NCBI GenBank assembly: GCA_025594325.1
Contig: JANHCV010000005.1
Coordinates: forward strand, 744,001-808,000
From: Blastocladiella emersonii ATCC 22665
Taxonomy: Eukaryota; Fungi; Blastocladiomycota
Direction: 5' to 3'
DNA length: 64,000 nt
Shown in pieces: positions 3,006 to 28,912 of the stretch (the stretch's first letter is position 1; the number at the start of each line of letters is the position of its first letter). Both the position numbers and the translations under genes were made by a program. The notes under the pieces were generated by a model, which did not search any database, had not been told where the DNA came from, and saw only the letters and a list, made by a program, of their open reading frames with translations.

Positions 3006-4597
3006 TCAGCACCCGCACGCGCCGGTTCCTGCCGGCTTGCAGCACGCTGTTGCTGGCGCTGCTCCCTCGCCCGCCGCCGCCGCCTTGGCCTTCTTGGGCC
3101 CACGCCCAGGAATCGGCCGCTTCGCGCCGCCCGCGGGCTTGACGCGGCGGCGGTGCCAGTTGACGCCCCACGGACCCGACGCGTCCTCGCGGGCGTAGTA
3201 GTCCATGGGGTAAACGTCGCGCCACTCGGACTCGCCGAGGACGACGGCGGCCTCGTATGGCGAGAGGAGCGGGGTAGCGAAGAAGCGGCCCCAGTCGATG
3301 GAGAGTCGCGGGCACGCGACCTGGACCCAGGCGCCGACGTCCGCGAACTCGGCGAGGCGGGCGGGGAAGATCTCGCTCATGCATACGACGACGACGGGGA
3401 TGCCGCGCTGGGCGAGCGCGTTGCGGACCCAGCCGAGCACGTCCGGGCTGCCCTGGCGGCCGAGCGTGCCCAGGATCAGGCCCCACTTCTTGGCAGCGCG
3501 CGCCGCGTCCATGGCGTCGATGCGCGCGCGGCGCATGTCGGCGTGGTCGTACCGCTCGCGCGTCAGCTGCGACGCGTACGGGTCGTACCGGTACGCGGGC
3601 AGGTCCGGGTTGTGGATCAGGATCGACTCGAGGTGGAACTTGCCGTCGCCCAGGTACACGACCGCGTCGATCGAGTCGTCGAGCCGCGGGGAGGTGCACC
3701 CGAGGATCTCGCCGGGACTCAGCGGCTTGGTCTGCGGCACCATCACGTCGTAGTGCGCCGCGAGCTCCTGCTTAGCGACGTGCAGGCTGCCGACGAACTG
3801 GATCGTCGCCACGAGCGCGAGCCGCGAGCCCAGCTCGAGGTTGTGCTTGACAATGTCGACGAAATGCGACACGTCGAACTGGATGTCGACAAACACGTAC
3901 AGCGTCTTGATGGTGGTCACGTCGACGGGGACTACGGCGGGGGATTGGGTCAGCAATCGGCCGTCACTTCAAGAGAACCAGGCAGATACGCACTCAAGCA
4001 CGAGTGGCCGTAATGCACCATGAAATCGCACCCGAGCGCGCGCGCCGTGAAGTCGTCGACGCAGCACGCGCCGTAGGTCACGTCGCCCATGATGACGGTA
4101 TCGACGCCCGTGAACTGCTCGAGAATGTCGGACAGAATACACGCAAACATCTGGAGACCCTCGGGCAGCTGCAGGGCGACGCGCTTGGCGCCGCACTCGG
4201 TGATCTGGTGCACCGTCTTGTGGATCTCAAAGTTGTAGTTGGCCGGCAGCGTCGCAATCGCCGCGTTGAGCAGCGGGTTGTGCAGGATCTCGTCCGGAAT
4301 CGCCCCGCGCTTCACCTTGCCCGCTGCGCCGCCGGAGGTGCCCGTGCCGAGCTGCACCAGCGCGCCCGCGTCCTCGATCGACGCCTGCGAGCCCGAGTTC
4401 GCGGCGGCGGCGGCGGTGGCGTCCTCCGAGGGGGTGCCGCCGGCCGACTTGACGACGGCATCCACCTTGCGCGAGCTGCCGACGAAGCGCTTGCGCGCGA
4501 CCTTGGCTGGCGCCGCCGCGGCGGTCGTCGTCTCGGGAGCCGCGGCCGGTGGCGTCGGCGTCGACGTTGCAGTTACATTCGAGGGTGGCGATGACAT
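3006..4597 (-). CDS. DPH1: Diphthamide biosynthesis protein 1 (2-(3-amino-3-carboxypropyl)histidine synthase subunit)
   Basis: [43 protein letters not shown] (across the intron at 3993-3932), [21 protein letters not shown] and YPMDYY. Confidence 0.95.
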
Positions 4598-4797
4598 GGT
4601 TGCTTCGTTGCGGTATGGGTCTAGGGGAGTAGAGGTGGTCAAGGTGTGCCTACGCCCCTTCGCAGCATCGGCCACCGCCGCAACGTGACGTGTTGTTGGG
4701 CGGGCTCGGCTGACTGGCCGCCAATCTAACCGCGCGTTGACCGACGCGCCTCCCCGGTCCCTGCCCTCAACAACGACAACACGTAACGCTATACACC

Positions 4798-5250
4798 ATG
4801 ATCGCTTCCGCTCTCCGCAACGCTGCGCGCCGGTCGGCCACGGGCGTCCGCCGCTACACGTCGGGCAAGGTCGCCGAGGTGACGGGCGAGGCGTTCGCCA
4901 AGACCATCACGTCGTCGAAGGTGCCCGTGCTCGTCGACTTTTACGCCACGTACGGTCCCTCCCTGACTGGTTACCTGCCTGAAATCTCACGCGAACTCTC
5001 GCGCGCGTGTAGGTGGTGCGGCCCGTGCCGCATGCTGGCGCCGGCGCTCGCGACCGTGGCCGAGCAGAACGCGGCGACGCTGGCCGTGGTCAAGGTGGAC
5101 ACGGACGAGGCCATGGAGGTGGCCGTCAAGTACGGCATCTCGGCGCTGCCGACCGTGGTGCTGTTCAAGAACGGCCACGAGGTGGACCGCTTCATGGGCG
5201 TGCGCAACGCCGAGGCCGTGCAGGCGTTCGTCGACCAGCACAAGGAGTAA
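4798..5250 (+). CDS. Mitochondrial thioredoxin
   Basis: Arg/Ala/Ser-rich presequence ([20 protein letters not shown]). Removing a 63-nt in-frame intron at 4950-5012 restores VDFYATWCGPC. Also contains [13 protein letters not shown]. Confidence 0.9.
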
Positions 5251-5425
5251 GTTCACGATACACATGCTTTGGGCATTCGCCCGCGTCGTGGAGCACCGAG
5301 TCGCGACGAGAGAGAGCGAGAGCTAGCGAGCGAGGTATGGACAGGACGATCGTGATAACAAATGGACAACAGGCGAGAGAGAATGAGGGGGCGGGTGGGG
5401 TAGTGTTGCAGGCGGGAACGACCGC

Positions 5426-5735
5426 TTACTGCTCCTGCTGCTGCTCGAGCTGGCGGCGCTTGTGCTCGCGCACCAGAGCCAGGGCCTTCTCGAGCTCCAC
5501 CTCCTGGCGCTGCTGCACGCCGTACAGCCAGTAGCCGAACGCGCCGAAGATGGTCGCCGCACCAGCGTGGCCAGCGGCGCCTACACACGTTGGTGGTGAG
5601 CGTCCTGGACCGGAAACCGCGGCGATCCGGCACCGACGTACCCGACAGCGGGTGCCGGCGCTCAATGGCGTTGGCAAAGGCGCGGGCGGTCAGACCGAAC
5701 GCGGCCCAGCCGGTCACACTCGTGAACAGGGTCAT
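5426..5735 (-). CDS. NADH:ubiquinone oxidoreductase accessory subunit, NDUFC2/B14.5b-like
   Basis: About 82 aa after removing the intron at 5641-5581: GWAAFGLTARAFANAIERRHPL...GAFGYWLYGVQQRQEVELEK. This follows the fungal B14.5b pattern (W.GFGL.VR...GIE.RP / FGYWL..V..RQ). Confidence 0.75.
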
Positions 5736-6078
5736 GGTTTCTCAAATTGGGCGTGGGGTGATGGTGCTGGGTGGTCGCGCAACGAGCGGGGATCGCGGCT
5801 GCTGCGTCGTCGGTGATTCGTGGACCGGTGGAAGTGGGCTCCGCGGGCAGACTGCGCAAAGTCGCAGGTCGGGTCGATACGTTGCAGATGGTGGCTCCGT
5901 CGTGCGTCGTCGCTTCGGTCGCTGGCCCGCTCAAAGCGACGGTGCAGCGAGCGGGGCGATGCAAAGCCGGCGAGTGGCGTGCGGTCACGCGGGCGGGGCC
6001 GATGATGGGTGTGGCAGGTCGATCGCTCGCGTTTTGTGAGACGCGTCGCGCCTCGCTTCGCTGCCTCTCCCCTTGACC

Positions 6079-18286: not shown

Positions 18287-19578
18287 GATGATGGCGGTGG
18301 TGATGACCGCGTCTTCGTCCCTGCGACCGCGTCGCAGAACATGACCGGTGGCGGCGGCAGCGGTGGCGAAGACGCCGAGGGCGATGCCTCAGGGACGACA
18401 CGGGCGCCGCCTTGTTCACGGCGGTGAGCTCTTAAAAAGCGCCCGGCGGCGGCGACGATGGCGCGAGCGCTCGCCCCGGGCGCGCGGGTCTCCGGTGGCG
18501 AAACCCGGCCAAGACGCTTCACGTGATGGGCGCCCACTCACTCGGCAAATTTCGCACGCGTTTCAGCAGCTGGCCACGCGGGCGAGCGGGCGGGCGGCGA
18601 GGGGGGTGGATACGCCCATACAAGCGACCCGCCGGCCTTATTCTGGACCGCTTGCTTGTGTGTCGCCACCACCGCCTCGCGGGCGCCTGCATGCGGGCGC
18701 CTGCCCACCGTCGCCACCGACGCTCAAAACCGCGCCGGCCCCGCATCCCTCGCTGCTTCTCTCGCCCCACTCTCGCACGCTAGCTCGTTCGTCTGTGGTA
18801 TGCTACCGCCGACTCCCTCGCTCGAGTGATGCTGCTGCTGCTGCTGCTCCACCTTCGACATCCTCCTCCCGAGCCCGCTCCTCTGTCACCTCGCCGCCGT
18901 CCTCGCCGTGGCTACCAACATCGCCGCCGCCTCCACCCCGCATCCCTTGTGGCGCCCGTCGATCCTCCTCCTTCCTCGTCTCGTCTCGGCCACGGCCACC
19001 CGTGGCCGGCGCCGACCCTCGCTCGCGAGCCCCGATCGAATCAACCGCCGCCGTGCGACGTCTCGGAGCTGGCCTGGCTTCGGCGTGCGTGGCGCCACAC
19101 GCGGCGGGCCCTTGCAGTCTTGCATGGACGAGATCCCTCGGGGCGTCGTGGCGGCGGCCCTTGTCGGTCACCGCGCTTCGCCCAACGTAGGCCTCGCTCG
19201 CTCGCAGGACATCCTGCAGGGTCGGCGTGGGGCGGCCGCAGCCTTCGCCGCACCCTGCCGCAGCGCTCCGCCCTCGCCGTCGTCCATTGGCCGTGCACTG
19301 AATCTCGGCGGTCATGCGCACGGGTCGCCGCCGTCGTTGTCGCTGACCACTGCGGCAGCGGCGGAAGCGAGTGTGGCGAAAAACGGGATCCGGCTGTCGG
19401 GTGGCGCTGCAGCACGTTTTCCTCGCCGATCACTCGCCCATCGCCCGCCCGCTCCTCTCCTCTCCTCTCTCCCACTCTCGCGGCAGTATCACTCGAGACC
19501 CATGCAACTTGACTAGATCACCGTCGTCTAACTCGCCGCATCGTCTCCAGGTCCTCCTTTAGACGCAAGTCCTAGATT

Positions 19579-19584
19579 TATAGA
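19579..19584 (+). promoter_or_regulatory. TATA-like element (TATAGA)
   Basis: TTTATAGAA lies 100 nt upstream of the ATG at 19679, followed by a C/A-rich putative 5'UTR. Confidence 0.45.
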
Positions 19585-19678
19585 AGCCTGATATCCTCGT
19601 CAGTGCACCTCTACGCTTGCACCAACCACCACTCCCTCCACCCCCTCCCCACCCCCACCCACCAACCTCATCTCTATC

Positions 19679-21475
19679 ATGAAGTTCGCCGCTGTTGCCG
19701 CCGCCACCCTGGCGTTCGCCGCCGCCGTCGAGGCCAACAAGTCGTCGGGCGGTGACGGCTCGACCCCCGCGCCCGTCACGACCAAGTACGAGCAGGGCAA
19801 CGTGCCCCAGATCATCACGTACGCGCTCGAGCACCTCAACAACATCCGCGCGTCCAAGGGCCTGCAGCCCCTGTGCATCAACAAGGCCCTCCAGGCCTCG
19901 GCCCAGGACCAGTCCAACTGGATGGCGTCGGTCGGCAAGCTCGACCACCGCCCCGACACGTTCGAGCGCTTCGACGGCTACGGCTACGCCCAGAACGTGC
20001 CCCGCGCCGAGAACATTGCCGTGAACCAGATCGGCGTGTCCAAGGGCGGCTGCTTCGGCCAGTACAACTCGATCGCCGTCAAGGACGACACCACCTCGGC
20101 CGCCTACACCACCGACTGCGCCTGGTACCAGTCGCCCGGCCACTACAAGAACATGATGACCCCCGGCTTCAACCAGGTCGGCATCGCCTACACCAAGGGC
20201 AACTGGATGGGCTCGCCCTCGTACTACTGGACCCAGAACTTTGGTACCTCGGCCCAGCCCTGCGTCTCCAACGACTACAAGCCGGCGCCCGCCCCGGCCC
20301 CGAAGCCCGAGGAGCCCAAGCCCAAGCCGTACGTGCCCGCCCCGGCCCCGGCCCCGAAGCCGAAGCCCGAGGAGCCCAAGCCCAAGCCGTACGTGCCCGC
20401 CCCCGCCGAGGAGCCCAAGCCCAAGCCGTACGTGCCCAAGCCGGCCGAGGAGCCCAAGCCCGAGCCCAAGAAGACGTACTCGCCCGCCCCGACCCCCGCC
20501 AAGACCGAGGAGCCCCCCAAGAAGACGTACCCCGTCGTGACCCCGACCCCGACCCCGGCCAAGACCGCCACCGAGATCCCCAAGGAGACGTACCCCGCCA
20601 AGAAGACGACCACCGAGGAGCCCAAGAAGACGTACCCCGTCGTCGTCCCGACCCCCGTCAAGACCGCCACCGAGGTCCCCACGGCCACGTACCCCGTCAA
20701 GACCGCCACCGAGGTCCCGACCGCCACCTACCCCGTCGACACCCCCAAGAAGACGGTCAAGAAGTGCAAGAAGTGGATCAAGGGCGGCAAGAAGACCCCC
20801 GTCGCCACCACCCCCGCTGGCTACGGCAAGGACGCCGAGGTGCCCACCGCCACCACGCCCGCTGGCTACGGCAAGGACGACGAGGTCCCGACCGCCACGA
20901 CCCCCGCCGGTTACGGCAAGGACGCCGAGGTCCCCACGGCCACCACTCCCGCCGGTGACTACTCGTACGGCAAGGGTGCCGAGGTCCCCGCCGTCGTTCC
21001 CACCACCCCCGCTGGCTACGGCAAGGACACCCCCAAGCCCGCCGAGACCACGCCCGCCGGCTACGCCAAGGACACGCCCGCGCCCGTCGCCACCCCCTCG
21101 ACCCCCGCCGGCGACTACTCGTACGGCAAGGGTGCCGAGGTCCCCGCCGTCGTCCCCACCACTCCCGCTGGCTACGGCAAGGACGCCGAGGTGCCCACCG
21201 CCACCACCCCCGCTGGCTACGGCAAGGACGCCGAGGTCCCGACCGCCACCACCCCCGCCGGCGGCGACTACTCGTACGGCAACGGCGCCGAGGTCCCCGC
21301 GGCCACCACCCCCGCTGGTGAGTACGTTGCCCCCACGACCGAAGAGTACTCGTACGGCGCTGCCCCCGCGCCCGTCCCGGCCCCCGCGCCCGTGAAGCCC
21401 GCGTACGGCCGCAAGGCCGTCGAGACCCCCAAGGCCGAGGCCGTGCCCGCCTACACCGGCGAGTCGTTCTACTGA
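19679..21475 (+). CDS. Secreted CAP (SCP/YkwD-like) domain protein with an extensin-like Pro/Thr/Lys/Tyr repeat tail
   Basis: Signal peptide MKFAAVAAATLAFAAAVEA. CAP motifs LNNIRASKGLQPL, AENIA, WYQSPGHYKNMM, QVGIAY and YWTQNFG. Then KPKPYVP repeats and about 10 TPAGYGKDAEVP/DYSYG repeats, ending in SFY. Single exon with strong GC3 bias. Confidence 0.88.
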   Translation: MKFAAVAAATLAFAAAVEANKSSGGDGSTPAPVTTKYEQGNVPQIITYALEHLNNIRASKGLQPLCINKALQASAQDQSNWMASVGKLDHRPDTFERFDGYGYAQNVPRAENIAVNQIGVSKGGCFGQYNSIAVKDDTTSAAYTTDCAWYQSPGHYKNMMTPGFNQVGIAYTKGNWMGSPSYYWTQNFGTSAQPCVSNDYKPAPAPAPKPEEPKPKPYVPAPAPAPKPKPEEPKPKPYVPAPAEEPKPKPYVPKPAEEPKPEPKKTYSPAPTPAKTEEPPKKTYPVVTPTPTPAKTATEIPKETYPAKKTTTEEPKKTYPVVVPTPVKTATEVPTATYPVKTATEVPTATYPVDTPKKTVKKCKKWIKGGKKTPVATTPAGYGKDAEVPTATTPAGYGKDDEVPTATTPAGYGKDAEVPTATTPAGDYSYGKGAEVPAVVPTTPAGYGKDTPKPAETTPAGYAKDTPAPVATPSTPAGDYSYGKGAEVPAVVPTTPAGYGKDAEVPTATTPAGYGKDAEVPTATTPAGGDYSYGNGAEVPAATTPAGEYVAPTTEEYSYGAAPAPVPAPAPVKPAYGRKAVETPKAEAVPAYTGESFY

Positions 21476-21773
21476 ACGGCCTCGTCGTAGATGCTGATCC
21501 GGGTTTTTGATTCTTCTCCATTTTGTGTAAACAACGTTCTCTCTCTCCTCCCTCATTTTGTGATGGATTCCTCTCTTCTCTCGAAAAAAAGAAACGGCGC
21601 GGAAGGTGGCCTCGGCCACTTTCTCGCCCTTCGACCCATCATCCATCCTCGGTGTGCACCTGGCGTGCCTGCCTCTCCTCGCTTGCGCAACCCGCATATA
21701 ACCATGTAATAGACGCGCTCTTCATCCAACCCTTGGTCTTTCATGAGCGGATTCGGCGAAGCGAGAAGAAAAA

Positions 21774-21793
21774 CGCGTCGCGTCGCGTCGCGT
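21774..21793. promoter_or_regulatory. (CGCGT)x4 array starting with an ACGCGT (MCB-like) site upstream of RVB1
   Basis: AAAAACGCGTCGCGTCGCGTCGCGT lies about 160-180 nt upstream of the RVB1 ATG. Confidence 0.4.
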
Positions 21794-21949
21794 CGGCTCG
21801 CGTCTCCTCAACCGGATCATGTGAGGCCACTTGACGTGTCGCTCTCACCCGCACGCGACCGCGCGACCGCGCTCGTTCGCGACGCTTCTCCCTCGACGCG
21901 CTTGCCCCCTCAGCCCCTGCCTGCAACGCAGAACGCAACGTATACGCAA

Positions 21950-23457
<1,508 letters not shown>

Positions 23458-23727
23458 TGGTCGGGGTTGGTAGTCATGGCATGCGTGTAATTTGATTTTG
23501 TGCAATCATCCACGGGTGTCTCGCAGCGGACGTGAGACATGGTTCGCGTTCCCCTCGGTTACGGCGCACGTGCGAGTGAAAGCAACCGCCGCGCCGCTGC
23601 CCGTCGGTCGGTTGCGCGTGCGTGGCCGCCGCCTCCTCGCTCTCTCACGCTTCGCTTCCTTACTCTCCCTCACACCAAGCAATTACGTCTCCCACTGCAA
23701 CGTAATCAACCCACGGATTAGAACGCA

Positions 23728-25619
23728 ATGCCCAAGGAACAACCCCGCCGTTCCAACACCAAGTCTGCGCGCGGTATGCGTCCATCGCCGTCGCGCGGCG
23801 GTCCCTGCCCAACCGCAACTTACGCCGTGCCGCCACCAATCTAGTGAAGCCCACGTCGCCCGCCAGCGCGACCAAGACGACGCGCAAGGTCGCGACGCCC
23901 GCCCGCACCACCACGCGCACCACGCGCTCGGCCGCTTCCGCTGCCGCCGCCACGCCGTCCAAGCCGACCACGGCCAAGGCGACGGTCAAGAAGCCCGCCA
24001 AGGGCGCTACCTCGCCCGTCGCTGCGACCGCCACCGCGGCGCCGAAGCGCGGCCGCGGACGCCCGCCCAAGAACGCCGCCGCTACCGCTGCCGCCGACGC
24101 TGAGGCGCCCGCGACGCCGAAACGTTCGGCTCGCGCTGCTTCGTCCCGCGCTACCGCGGCTGCTACCATGGCGAGCTCGGCGACGCCCACGGCGCGTACC
24201 CCGCGTGCCGCGTCCAAGCCGCGCGCGCCGCCCAAGGTCATCGAGGGCGACTTCGCGACGCCCGCGCGCGCCGAGCAGTCGGGGATGCTGTTCGTGATGG
24301 GCAACGGCGACGGCGGGCAGCTCGGGCTCGGGCCCAACCGCAAGGACGCGTACAAGCCGTACCCGGTCGCCGCGCTCAAGGAGGAGCCCGTCGTCGACGT
24401 TGTCGCCGGCGGGATGCACACGCTGGCGCTGACCAAGAACGGGACCGTGTACTCGTGGGGCGTCAACGACGAGGGCGCGCTCGGCCGCGCGGTGCCCGAG
24501 GACGGCGACTGCGACGTGGCGGCGATCCCGGGCTCGGCCGAGCTCAACTTCGTCAAGCTCGCCGCCGGCGACAGCATCTCGCTCGGGCTCACGGGCGACG
24601 GCAAGATCTACGCGTGGGGCACGTTCCGCAGCGAGCAGGCGGCCGGCGGGCTCGGGTTCTCGGCGCAGACCAAGAACGCGACCTCGCCGCAGCTGCTCGA
24701 CCAGGGCGTGTTTGCGCAGCACCGGTGGATCGATATCGCGGCCGGCGACAACCACGCGCTCGCGCTCACGTCGACGGGCCGCGTGTACGGGTGGGGCAAC
24801 ACGGAGATGGGCCAGTGCGGGTTCCGCACGCACCACCCGAAGCTCGGCCTGACGCCGCGCCTGCTCAAGTTTGGCGGGCGCCGCAACCACAAGATCACGT
24901 CGATTGCGTGCGGGTCGTTCCACTCCATGGCCATTGACGAGGACGGCGACCTGTGGATGTTCGGACTCAACAACTGGGGCCAGTGCGGCCGCCACACGTC
25001 CGTCAACCCGTTGTACGAGCCGGCGTTCATCACGCTGCCGCCCGACACGTCGGTCGTCGCCGCGGCCGGCGGCGAGCACCACACACTGGCGCTGCTCGAC
25101 GACGGGCGCGTGCTCGCGTTCGGCCGCAGCTCCGGGTGCGAGCTCGGGCTCGGCGAGCTCGTGAACCTCGACCCCGTCACGGGCGAGCCCACGGCGCAGA
25201 AGATGTTCGCCACCGAGACCACGCCCGACGGCCAGGAGATCCAGTCCGAGATCCCCTCGCACATCATGCTCCCGACCCCGCAGCCCGCGTACCCGACCAA
25301 GGTCACCAAGATCGCCGCGGGGACTCACCACTGCATGGCCATCACCGACGACGGCACCGTGTACCGGTGGGGCACCAACGGGTCCGCCCAGCTCGGCACG
25401 GGCTCGGCCGCGTTCGAGGCCGACGACGAGGCCGAGGACGACCAGAGCACGCCGCTCGCGTTCGACTTCTCCAAGTCGGGCGCTAAGGGTATCGCTGCCG
25501 CGTGCGGCGCACAGCACTCGGTCCTGCTGCTGTCCAAGCCCGCCAAGAAGCCCGCCGCGGCCGCGCCCGCGCCGACGGCTAACGGCGACGTCGAGATGCC
25601 GCCAGCCTCGCAGTCGTAA
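23728..25619 (+). CDS. RCC1: Ran guanine-nucleotide exchange factor RCC1 (Pim1/Prp20-like)
   Basis: Basic N-terminal tail with an AT-hook-like KRGRGRP, then RCC1 repeats (GNGDGGQLGLG, AGGMHTLAL, WGVNDEGALGR, AGDSISLGL, AGDNHALAL, GGEHHTLAL, AGTHHCMAI). One inferred intron at about 23774-23843. Confidence 0.92.
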
Positions 25620-26939
25620 GCGACTGTGCGACCGACCGACCTTTTTGGATCATCCTCGAGCTCCTCATCCTCTCACCCCTCCCTTCCCTCCCTTTCTCTC
25701 GTCCACGACCACCACCTCCATCGTCTCCTATTTAATCAACACTGCGGTTGTACATCTCTCGCTTGACCTGGCTCGGCCGCGTCAGGGACCGCGACGGCGG
25801 CCATCACAGGCACGATCAGACGCCGGGAGGCGACGCCGCGCACGACGCCCAGCACGACGCCCACCACACCGTGAACAACGAAACGTGTCCCTGATGTTGG
25901 CCGCGGCGGTGCCGGCGGCAGAAGAGCGCGTCCGGGGCTGCGCGGCGCGCCGCACGCCTACGCGGCAGATCAGGGTTTTATCACGGTGAAACGGCGGTCA
26001 CGCGGGAGGCGGAAATCCCGCGGGACACGGCGATTGGCCCGTTCCGCTAAACACCTGCCGCAATATGGGCAGCTGTGGCGGAAGTGGGCGTTTCAACGTG
26101 CATGCAGCAGAGAAAACAAAGGCGTCACTCGCCGGCCGGCGTGTGGGCCCATCTTGCGCCTCATGACCACCGAGTCGGACGGCAGGCGGGCGCCGACGCT
26201 GCCGCCGCCCTCGCCGCCCCCTCCCCCGCGGCCCGCGGCCCGCCGCTCTCTCTCTCGGCCTTGAAAGGCTCGCGGGGGATGTGCTACGACTTGGACTCGA
26301 GTTTGCTCTTCTGCCTTCACGCTCTCCAACCACACGCACTGCGCTTCCTTCGGCAACGATGTACGTGCCGCCGCGCCCGCGCACTCGCTCATGCATCTCC
26401 ACCTCTTCGGCCATTGGCGCCAGCAGCAGCTTCCAGGGATCCACCAGCAGCAGCTCGGCGCAGTACGAGCGCACTCGACGTCGTGGCGGCCGTGGCGCCG
26501 TCTACCTCGCTTCTCGAACCTCGTCGTGCAGGCGGCGCAGCCTTGCATGTGTCGATGTGGCGCTTCGGCTGCAGCACCAGGGACTCGCCCATGCACTCGC
26601 TCGTCTACTCGAGCCGTCGCCGGCTTCGTCGTGCTTTCTCGCCGTCATGGCGACCGACGGCAGCGGCAGGACTCGCGGCCGACCCGCACGTTCTCGTTTC
26701 GGGGCCCATGCGCTTGCGAAACCACTCGCCTCGCCGGGTCTGCTCCGACCCGACCCGCCCCGCACGTTTCTGCAACGCTGCGTGCCGCCGCTACGCCACA
26801 CCGACTCGCCGCTGCTGCTGCTCGCTGGTCGCTGCTCGCCCTGCTCCGCCACCCACTCTCCCCTCTCCTCCCCGCTCTCTTCGCTCGACCACTCGCTGAC
26901 CATCTTCTCCTCACGCACTCGCAGTTAGACGAGCGCTTG

Positions 26940-26953
26940 TATAGATCATAGAC
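26940..26953 (+). promoter_or_regulatory. TATA-like TATAGA plus a TAGAC motif
   Basis: TGTATAGATCATAGACG lies 89 nt upstream of the ATG at 27029. Confidence 0.45.
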
Positions 26954-27028
26954 GTGGCGATCAGCAACAACCGATCTCCCCCTTTACCCACCACCCATCC
27001 CCACCAACCACACTCCACTCGTTCCAAA

Positions 27029-28585
27029 ATGGTGAAGCCGTCCGCCCTGACCGTCCTGTCCGTCGTTGGCCTCATGGCCTCGACCGTCGCCGCCGAGGCC
27101 GTCTACAAGCCCAAGCCGACGCCCACCGCCACCACCTCGGTTGTCGCCACCGAGGTCCCGACCCCCGCCAAGACCTACCCCGGCGCCGTCGTGCCCCCGA
27201 CCAAGCCCACCACCGTCATCCCCGGCGACTACTCGTACGGTGGCAAGACCCCCGCGCCCGTCGACACCCCCAAGCCCGTCGAGACCACCCCCGCCGAGTA
27301 CGGCTACAACGGCAAGCACGAGTACGACGAGACCGAGGACCTGTGCGTCGAGTACGAGGAGGTCGAGGAGGTCGAGGAGGACTGCGACGAGGAAGAGGAG
27401 GACGTCGAGGAGGACTGCGAGGAGGACGAGGAGGAGGACGAGGAGGAGGACTGCGAGGAGGACGAGGAGGAGGACGAGGAGGAGGACTGCGAGGAGGACG
27501 ACGAGGAGCCCGAGGAGGAGGACTGCGAGGAGGAGGTCCCCGCCCCCGTCCCGACCACGCCCACCGGCTACGGCAAGGACACGCCCGTCCCCGTCCAGAC
27601 CACGCCCGCCGGCTCGTACGAGACCCCCAAGGACACGCCCAAGCCCGCCGAGACCACCCCCGCCGGCGACTACGGCTACGGCACCCCCGCCACGCCCAAG
27701 GACACGCCCAAGGAGACCACCCCCGCTGGCTCGTACGAGACCCCCAAGGACACGCCCAAGCCCGTCCAGACCACTCCCGCTGGTGACTACGGCTACGGCA
27801 ACCCCGTCGACACGCCCAAGCCCGCCAAGACCATCCCCTCGGGCGGCTACTACGCGTCGCGCACCGAGTCGGTGATCCCGACCACCACCTCGCCCATCTA
27901 CGGCCCCGGCGGCGACTACGGCTACGGCAACCCCGTCACCACCCCCGTCCCGACCACCCCCGCCGGCTACGGCAAGGACACCCCCGCCCCGGTCCCCGCC
28001 CCGGTCCCCGCCCCGACCCAGCCCGCCGACGAGTACAACCCCGACGAGGACCTGTGCGTCGACGAGGAGGTCGAGGACGAGGAGGAGTGCGAGGACGAGG
28101 AGGATGAGGAGGAGGACTGCGAGGAGGATGACGAGGAGGACCAGGACGAGGACTGCGAGGAGGATGAGGAGGACGACGAGGAGGAGTGCGAGGAGGACGA
28201 GGAGGAGGCCGAGGAGGAGGACTGCGAGGAGGACGAGACCCCCGCCCCCGTCCCGACCACGCCCACCGGCTACGGCAAGGACGCCGAGGTCCCGACCGCC
28301 ACCACCCCCGCCGGCGGCTACGCCAAGGACACGCCCGCCCCGGTCGCCACGCCCTCGACCCCCGCCGGTGACTACTCGTACGGCGCCAAGCCCGCGCCCG
28401 TCGACACCCCCAAGCCCATCGAGACCACCCCCGCCGGTGCCGACTACTCGTACGGCGCCGTCCCCGCCCCGAAGCCCGCCCCCGTCCCCGCCTATGGCAA
28501 GACCTCGGAGGCGCCCATCGCCGCCCCCGCTGCCCCGGCTGCCCCCGCTGCCGACGCCGCTCCCTACTCGGCCTCGTTCTACTGA
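27029..28585 (+). CDS. Secreted extensin-like repeat protein with two acidic Cys ladders (paralogous repeats to 19679-21475)
   Basis: Signal peptide MVKPSALTVLSVVGLMASTVAA. TPAGYGKD, DYSYG and DYGYG repeats. Two Glu/Asp blocks, each with six Cys (EEDCEED). Ends in SFY. Single exon, 518 aa from the ATG at 27029. Confidence 0.88.
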   Translation: MVKPSALTVLSVVGLMASTVAAEAVYKPKPTPTATTSVVATEVPTPAKTYPGAVVPPTKPTTVIPGDYSYGGKTPAPVDTPKPVETTPAEYGYNGKHEYDETEDLCVEYEEVEEVEEDCDEEEEDVEEDCEEDEEEDEEEDCEEDEEEDEEEDCEEDDEEPEEEDCEEEVPAPVPTTPTGYGKDTPVPVQTTPAGSYETPKDTPKPAETTPAGDYGYGTPATPKDTPKETTPAGSYETPKDTPKPVQTTPAGDYGYGNPVDTPKPAKTIPSGGYYASRTESVIPTTTSPIYGPGGDYGYGNPVTTPVPTTPAGYGKDTPAPVPAPVPAPTQPADEYNPDEDLCVDEEVEDEEECEDEEDEEEDCEEDDEEDQDEDCEEDEEDDEEECEEDEEEAEEEDCEEDETPAPVPTTPTGYGKDAEVPTATTPAGGYAKDTPAPVATPSTPAGDYSYGAKPAPVDTPKPIETTPAGADYSYGAVPAPKPAPVPAYGKTSEAPIAAPAAPAAPAADAAPYSASFY

Positions 28586-28912
28586 ACGGCAACTGCGCTG
28601 CCCGACACGCGTCGTCGTCGACCATGATCGCCGCTGGTAGCATCGGTTTTGTTTGATCTGTCTTTCGTTTTTGTGTATCTTGTTTCTCTCCCTTGTGATT
28701 CCACTCGCGCCGCTCGCGGCCGCATCGTGTGATGTCCAACATGTATCTTTTGCTTCATCTTCTTCATGATCCTCGAACAGCCAGCGTCTCGCCTAAGGGA
28801 CGATTCTCCTGTTCGCTGTCGTTCGCTGACGAGTCGAGCGACTCAAGCGAGTTGCAGCGGATCAACGTCGCGGAGCCGAGCTTGGAGCAGGGAGCTTTGA
28901 GGCGAGGAACGC

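Follow-up and report, generated by a model that had tools for sequence, protein, structure and literature searches.

The stretch of DNA analysed here (the window) comprises 64,000 nucleotides of the genome of the fungus Blastocladiella emersonii ATCC 22665 (contig JANHCV010000005.1, positions 744,001 to 808,000) and contains two genes, referred to as A and B, which encode secreted, repetitive proteins. Both genes lie on the forward strand, 5.5 kb apart, with genes for RVB1 and an RCC1-repeat protein in between (Table 1). An earlier sequence-only reading had described A and B as single-exon genes with signal peptides, separated only by RVB1 and RCC1, which share a repeat vocabulary and an SFY end and carry either a CAP domain with KPKPYVP repeats (A) or two very acidic Cys ladders (B). 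All of this is confirmed by the open reading frames (ORFs), Pfam and BLASTP. Moreover, the recurrence of the order A-then-B in the genus Allomyces and a common C-terminal end of the form S-x-Y support the view that the two genes belong together. The proposal of the same reading that A and B are extensin-like proteins held together by tyrosine cross-links is not borne out in this form, as discussed below.

Both frames are real coding frames, since their third-position GC content (0.96) is like that of the neighbouring genes (0.94-0.97) and unlike that of an antisense ORF of 712 codons, which spans all of gene A (19559-21697, reverse strand) and was rejected as a GC artefact (0.59). A protein identical to the product of gene A is already publicly annotated; it is encoded by a single exon on a contig of 2.2 Mb. 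Unlike the protein of gene A, that of gene B has no exact entry in a public collection of 15 billion proteins; the public record of the B. emersonii genome seems to lack an annotation of gene B or to have a different one. The assembly itself is confirmed by public genomic contigs, which span positions 21250-27249 with zero differences in the best run.

Protein A begins with a signal peptide, followed by a CAP/SCP domain that matches PF00188 over the whole profile (positions 1-117) with 52.9 bits, compared to a cut-off of 21.1. An AlphaFold model of this CAP head has a mean predicted local distance difference test (pLDDT) score of 73.9 and a predicted template modelling score of 0.76, and Foldseek aligns it with a probability of 1.00 to GAPR-1, Borrelia BB0689, yeast Pry1 and plant PR-1. 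With both the Pfam domain and the alpha-beta-alpha sandwich fold present, A is a member of the CAP/SCP/PR-1 superfamily. Three residues, H90, E111 and H155, are invariant in A and its relatives and are candidate His/Glu cavity residues. By sequence, the nearest proteins to the CAP domain are the bacterial extracellular SCP proteins 4ifa, 4d53 and 4h0a together with a protein of the Paceibacterota, rather than eukaryotic PR-1 or Pry proteins. The approximately 400 residues after the CAP domain are rich in Ser and Thr (15-20 %) and in Pro (15-27 %). They start with a basic stalk, closed by a short Cys motif; residues 200-372, which include this motif, have a net charge of +16 and contain 27 % Pro. 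The stalk is followed by Tyr-Gly repeats and the C-terminal module. KPKPYVP occurs three times in A, YGKD six times, and TPAG eleven times. The stalk has a charge of +16 and the repeats one of -13, and mature A has a net charge of +4 overall. A hydropathy scan detected no membrane segment beyond the N-terminus of A and no hydrophobic segment past residue 30. Likewise, no tail of the glycosylphosphatidylinositol (GPI) type was found in A, the hydropathy of the last 19-residue window being -0.23.

Protein B has a net charge of -117. The ATG at 27029 is the preferred start codon; a GTG in the same frame is located upstream at 26954. Cleavage of the predicted signal peptide would leave VYKPKP at the mature N-terminus. 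The two acidic ladders are segments of 70 residues, consisting of about 80 % Asp and Glu, in which Cys residues recur every 10-13 residues. The ladders are internal duplicates of each other (76 % DNA identity over 269 nt) and have a common lead-in, EY-N-DEDLCV-EEVE. In the repeats of B, YGKD occurs three times and TPAG eight times. AlphaFold predicts B to be disordered throughout, without secondary structure (pLDDT 43.6), and a folded helical ladder is unsupported by this model. Pfam matches of B to Nop14 and Nop53 stay under the curated cut-offs and were rejected as matches between acidic low-complexity sequences. According to its hydropathy profile, B has one N-terminal hydrophobic segment, and neither a later membrane segment nor a hydrophobic C-terminal tail.

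Table 1. Genes and features at the A/B locus of B. emersonii. Positions are those of the window; aa, amino acids.
Feature	Position	Strand	Basis or remark
Gene A, secreted CAP-headed repeat protein, 598 aa, single exon	19679..21475	+	ORF; third-position GC 0.96
A signal peptide, aa 1-19, predicted cleavage after VEA	19679..19735	+	sole hydrophobic segment of the protein
A CAP/SCP domain, aa 50-188, 4 conserved Cys	19826..20242	+	Pfam PF00188, E 7.9e-14
A basic Lys/Pro/Thr stalk, units KPKPYVP, PKKTYP, TATYPV	20276..20758	+	tandem repeats
A basic Cys motif KKCKKWIKGGKK, 12 aa, holds the fifth, unpaired Cys	20759..20794	+	conservation in relatives; closes the stalk
A Tyr-Gly repeats, TTPAGYGKDAEVP and TPAGDYSYG, ~190 residues	20795..21358	+	45-nt and 156-nt tandem arrays; common to B
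A C-terminal module, ...PAYGRK...AYTGESFY and stop	21359..21475	+	alignments; 17-nt block common to B
RVB1 (TIP49 ATPase), intervening housekeeping gene	21950..23457	+	Pfam TIP49, TIP49_C
RCC1-repeat protein, intervening gene	23844..25619	+	Pfam RCC1, WD40_RLD
Promoter-proximal element TATAGATCATAGACG, ~80 nt upstream of the B start codon	26940..26954	+	near-identical CATAGACCATAGACG at the same distance upstream of Allomyces B genes
Gene B, secreted poly-acidic Cys-ladder repeat protein, 518 aa	27029..28585	+	ORF; third-position GC 0.96
B signal peptide, aa 1-24, predicted cleavage after AEA	27029..27100	+	hydropathy; resembles Allomyces B signal peptide
B acidic Cys ladder 1, aa 101-170, 6 Cys, net charge -55	27329..27538	+	lead-in EDxCxEYE kept in Allomyces
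B middle Tyr-Gly/Thr-Pro repeats	27539..28033	+	
B acidic Cys ladder 2, aa 336-403, 6 Cys, net charge -54	28034..28237	+	internal duplicate of ladder 1
B C-terminal repeats and ...PAYGK...YSASFY end	28238..28585	+	most A-like part of B

The resemblance between A and B exceeds chance. BLASTP aligns the two proteins at 1e-16 with composition adjustment, and peptides of 23 and 17 residues are identical in both. At the nucleotide level, the 17-residue block shows 0 differences in 51 positions and the 23-residue block 4 in 69. The C-terminal repeats of B are 83 % identical to gene A over about 150 nt, including the identical block of 51 nt. The two genes also agree at every position of a further block of 17 nt, which starts three codons before the stop codon and ends five bases after it. 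In an exhaustive HMMER search with B against 1.84 billion representative proteins, A was the sole credible match (1e-35); the other 19 matches were marginal acidic proteins, none of which has the signal peptide, the ladders and the Tyr end in combination. A word-indexed search with the whole of B, or with its middle repeats, found A alone. For relatives of B, a blank sequence search is weak evidence of absence, as phmmer matches B to its Allomyces counterpart just at an E-value of 0.5.

How specific is the C-terminal end? A survey of 1069 stop-free frames of at least 100 residues, drawn from the window and six related loci (about 190 kb), returned 11 frames ending in S-[FYL]-Y, all of which are genes of the A or B family. 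In most family members, a PAYG(K/R/G)K motif is found upstream of this end. A signal peptide, Thr/Pro-rich spacers and the S-[FYL]-Y end are combined in A and B of the window, in A of Blastocladiella britannica, and in A and B of both Allomyces arbusculus and Allomyces macrogynus. The C-terminus of A from A. javanicus fits the S-[FYL]-Y pattern as well, while A of Sorochytrium milnesiophthora ends in GGY and retains the terminal Tyr alone. We know of no described role for an S-x-Y end in secreted fungal proteins. It may serve both families as a common sorting, processing or anchoring signal, which is a prediction from the sequences.

Orthologues of A were found in B. britannica, S. milnesiophthora and Allomyces species, and they have in common a signal peptide, a CAP domain with four Cys, a Pro-rich stalk, a basic Cys motif and a terminal Tyr. 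B. britannica and Sorochytrium have the motif KKCKKWIKGGKK in exact form, Allomyces in a looser one; KKCKKW is kept in three genera. At three Allomyces loci, one in A. arbusculus and two in A. macrogynus, the A orthologue is followed by a B-like gene 7-8.5 kb downstream on the same strand. The B-like gene of A. arbusculus is annotated, encodes 444 residues, and is located 7 kb downstream of A. Its putative status as the B orthologue is based on architecture, position and a promoter element. The signal peptides resemble each other (MVNKSVLALTVLSVV in Allomyces vs MVKPSALTVLSVV in Blastocladiella), and Allomyces B has two acidic ladders as well, with 6 and 7 Cys and the EDxCxEYE core at both. 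The spacers are rich in Thr, Pro and Val, and the protein ends in ...ADYSTGESFY, the last six residues of which are those of Blastocladiella A. In A, the CAP head and the basic Cys motif are conserved across genera, in B the acidic Cys ladders, and in both proteins the C-terminal end.

In Allomyces, the gene between A and B encodes a membrane protein of 750 residues, and neither RVB1 nor RCC1 is present there. Because the interior thus differs from that of Blastocladiella, the linkage of A and B has outlasted a change of the interior genes. Both homeologous loci of A. macrogynus have A followed by the B-like gene, one of them with a tandem duplicate of A. On A. macrogynus GG745350, the tandem copies AMAG_11549 and AMAG_11550 encode identical proteins, and a partial copy of the 750-residue interior gene precedes the B-like gene. 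The linkage of an A-B pair in Allomyces is the principal new result.

The same data can be read in another way, which we consider unlikely, though the strongest of the competing explanations: A and B might be two independent mucin-like wall or surface proteins, derived from one ancestral gene with occasional gene conversion, whose proximity is leftover synteny. The near-identical repeat parts fit conversion between paralogues, the genes in between are unrelated housekeeping genes, and neither B. britannica nor Sorochytrium has a B-like gene closer than 10 kb to its A orthologue. Furthermore, the RVB1 orthologue of Sorochytrium (80-90 % identity) is located 4 kb from A, on the opposite strand (positions 4066-5855 of the locus L003), which implies that age alone accounts for part of the local gene order. 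The neighbourhood of A and RVB1 would accordingly predate the split of Blastocladiella and Sorochytrium, and a region that keeps old gene order might keep A and B together as well. However, the order and orientation of A and B persist from Blastocladiella to Allomyces despite the replacement of the interior genes, and each protein conserves a feature that complements the other, i.e., the basic Cys motif in A and the acidic Cys ladders in B.

Elements of the type TAGAC or TATAGA were found upstream of every A and B gene examined, and a common promoter was considered as a sign of co-regulation. This was rejected, as ATAGAC is also found upstream of RVB1 (21709) and is not enriched in the window. 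ATAGAC-type elements are probably a general core-promoter feature, maybe phylum-wide. What is distinctive is the tandem form alone, ATAGAyCATAGACG, which the B genes of Blastocladiella and Allomyces carry (in Allomyces at about 18680-18695 of the locus L002, and at L005 and L006). The four public runs that contain the locus, all from one sample, are genomic DNA contigs with uniform depth across introns and intergenic DNA.

Tyrosine was at the centre of the sequence-only reading. According to the resulting model, A and B are co-secreted, associate as an oppositely charged pair, and are locked by peroxidase- or tyrosinase-driven cross-links (dityrosine, isodityrosine or 3,4-dihydroxyphenylalanine) to form an adhesive or coat. 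Several observations speak for such a chemistry: Tyr accounts for 6-7 % of both proteins and for 8-9 % of their repeat regions, the A repeats of B. britannica are Tyr-rich (9.7 % after the CAP domain), and the motifs TATYPV and PAYG as well as the terminal Tyr of A recur in Allomyces A. The cross-link motif YxY occurs five times in A (once inside the CAP domain) and seven times in B. Compared to shuffled sequences, it is enriched in B (7 observed vs 1.9 expected, P 0.0015) and not enriched in the stalk of A (P 0.14). The only VYK of the two proteins stands at the N-terminus predicted for mature B; A has none. Tyr-rich, cross-linked walls are indeed known from elsewhere: YXY is the cross-link motif of plant extensins, in which VYK is at best a minor participant (PMC4844335), and the Tyr-rich, cross-linked wall-forming proteins of coccidian oocysts are released together (PMC4776368).

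However, tyrosine chemistry is not what the pair conserves. Allomyces B contains 1.2 % Tyr and consists of Tyr-free TVPVVPTSTVP repeats, without Tyr-Gly repeats and with YxY missing from the repeats, and Tyr drops to 3.2 % after the CAP domain of Allomyces A. The Tyr-Gly vocabulary, which includes that of B. britannica A, is thus specific to the Blastocladiella lineage among the relatives compared. Neither the ORF list nor Pfam revealed an oxidase gene at the locus, and the overall basicity of A is weak. That tyrosine cross-linking is the central function of the pair is not supported, and we consider the model improbable. At most, tyrosine cross-linking may be an addition in Blastocladiella.

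The label "extensin-like" has to be abandoned, too. Extensins are defined by Ser-(Hyp)4 repeats (Hyp, hydroxyproline), encoded as SPPPP or SPPP (PMC4844335), and a motif count found SPPP, SPP and PPP 0 times each in A and B. Membership in the extensins is ruled out by this count, and the resemblance is one of composition. Like extensins and other proline-rich wall proteins of plants, A and B are secreted, Pro-rich, repetitive and Tyr-containing, with YxY and one VYK, and the KPKPYVP units of A recall proline-rich proteins of the PPVYK type. In contrast to the plant proteins, they lack Ser-Pro4 and detectable homology, and their Tyr content is not conserved in Allomyces B.

Two further systems invite comparison. 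Coccidian oocyst walls and insect resilin also contain secreted Tyr/Gly-rich repeats, and the DYSYG and SYGA units of A and B resemble resilin-type units. A and B differ from these proteins in having no homology to them and in their lower Tyr content (6-7 %), which is specific to the Blastocladiella lineage. In sandcastle-worm cement and mussel foot proteins, a strongly acidic protein is found beside one rich in Lys, Tyr and Pro, and the KPxPY and KKTYP units of A recall the decapeptides of mussel foot proteins. Unlike in these marine adhesives, the acidity of B is provided by Asp and Glu together with Cys instead of phosphoserine, A has a charge of only +4, and the organisms are unrelated, without homology between the proteins.

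Which function could unite the conserved parts? The reading that we favour, with a confidence halfway between doubt and conviction, is that A and B are a pair specific to the Blastocladiales, consisting of secreted, largely unfolded Thr/Pro-rich proteins that probably act in one extracellular structure. This structure may be, for example, a wall, a cyst or sporangium coat, or a surface matrix. The two proteins are probably O-glycosylated: their tails contain 24 and 30 TP dipeptides, and Thr-Pro is the usual substrate of fungal O-glycosylation. Look-alikes of both tails retrieved by a language-model search of the ESM Atlas were fungal wall proteins (Als, flocculin, DAN4 and FIT), with weak scores of 0.53-0.85 that can serve as a lead only. 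In A, a long basic stalk would be tipped by the CAP/SCP domain and would carry the extra Cys in the strongly basic motif, and B would provide a polyanionic scaffold with two ladders of evenly spaced Cys. Association would probably be achieved by charge, i.e., between the basic stalk with its KKCKKW motif and the acidic ladders, possibly together with Ca2+, along with disulfide coupling, while the common S-x-Y end would act in delivery or retention. As the conserved parts are the basic Cys motif and the acidic Cys ladders, and Tyr content is not conserved, coupling by charge and disulfides is more likely than coupling by tyrosine. The spacers of A and B have turned Tyr-Gly rich in the lineage of Blastocladiella, with part of the repeat sequence exchanged between the A and B genes; these repeats would permit oxidative cross-linking of Tyr as an extra feature. 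A more detailed version of this mechanism is rather doubtful: the Cys of KKCKKW might dock on ladder Cys residues, with charge steering the formation of disulfides at up to 12 sites per scaffold, S-x-Y might serve as a new signal by which both proteins are delivered or retained, and the added Tyr-Gly repeats might allow a second, oxidative hardening in Blastocladiella.

The acidic ladders might also be explained without a matrix. B could be a granin-like, high-capacity binding protein for Ca2+ or other metals, which condenses cargo such as A in vesicles of the secretory pathway. Two segments with such a density of Asp and Glu, the disorder of the entire protein, a signal peptide without an anchor, and the fact that the ladders are the conserved part of B would all fit. 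Ion binding alone, however, explains neither the even spacing of the conserved Cys residues nor the C-terminal module common to A and B, and the Thr/Pro-rich spacers resemble those of wall glycoproteins. We regard this explanation as the least probable of those considered.

Several points weigh against the favoured reading of A and B as partners in one structure, in which a physical interaction between the two proteins is a prediction from sequence features. The charges are very unequal (-117 for B vs +4 for mature A, with +16 in its stalk), which leaves the analogy to coacervating adhesives weak. Allomyces A has an even number of Cys, and the unpaired basic Cys is accordingly not constant. 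The orthology of Allomyces B is without support from sequence search, given the phmmer result, and the missing linkage in B. britannica and Sorochytrium shows that the arrangement is not universal; the A-B linkage could be a mere remnant of an old tandem duplication. Finally, no public RNA runs are listed over positions 21300-27299.

Among described proteins, the closest analogue of A is yeast Pry3, whose CAP domain is displayed on a Ser/Thr-rich stalk in the wall (PMC7340583). Like Pry3 and other fungal CAP proteins (PR-1-like, PRY), A combines an N-terminal CAP domain with a long low-complexity stalk rich in hydroxy amino acids. In contrast to Pry3, A has no GPI-type tail, bacterial SCP proteins are the nearest to its CAP domain by sequence, its stalk is rich in Lys, Pro and Tyr and contains a basic Cys motif, and it has an S-x-Y end and a linked gene for an acidic partner. 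A literature search retrieved nothing on the A and B genes, their Allomyces locus tags, similar proteins or CAP proteins in Blastocladiomycota, and the 2006 paper on B. emersonii expressed sequence tags does not mention the relevant terms.

Knowledge of wall and surface proteins in zoosporic fungi is very limited, and the conserved and easily recognised A/B pair might provide an entry point to the assembly of the wall or cyst coat in a classic developmental model. A practical result for annotation is that the public protein set of B. emersonii lacks gene B. The acidic Cys ladder represents an orphan protein type, with no detectable relative outside the Blastocladiales, and S-x-Y is a short C-terminal signature that is directly testable as a sorting or anchoring signal. 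If tyrosine chemistry does take place in Blastocladiella, a Tyr-hardened matrix would, speculatively, have arisen independently in fungi.

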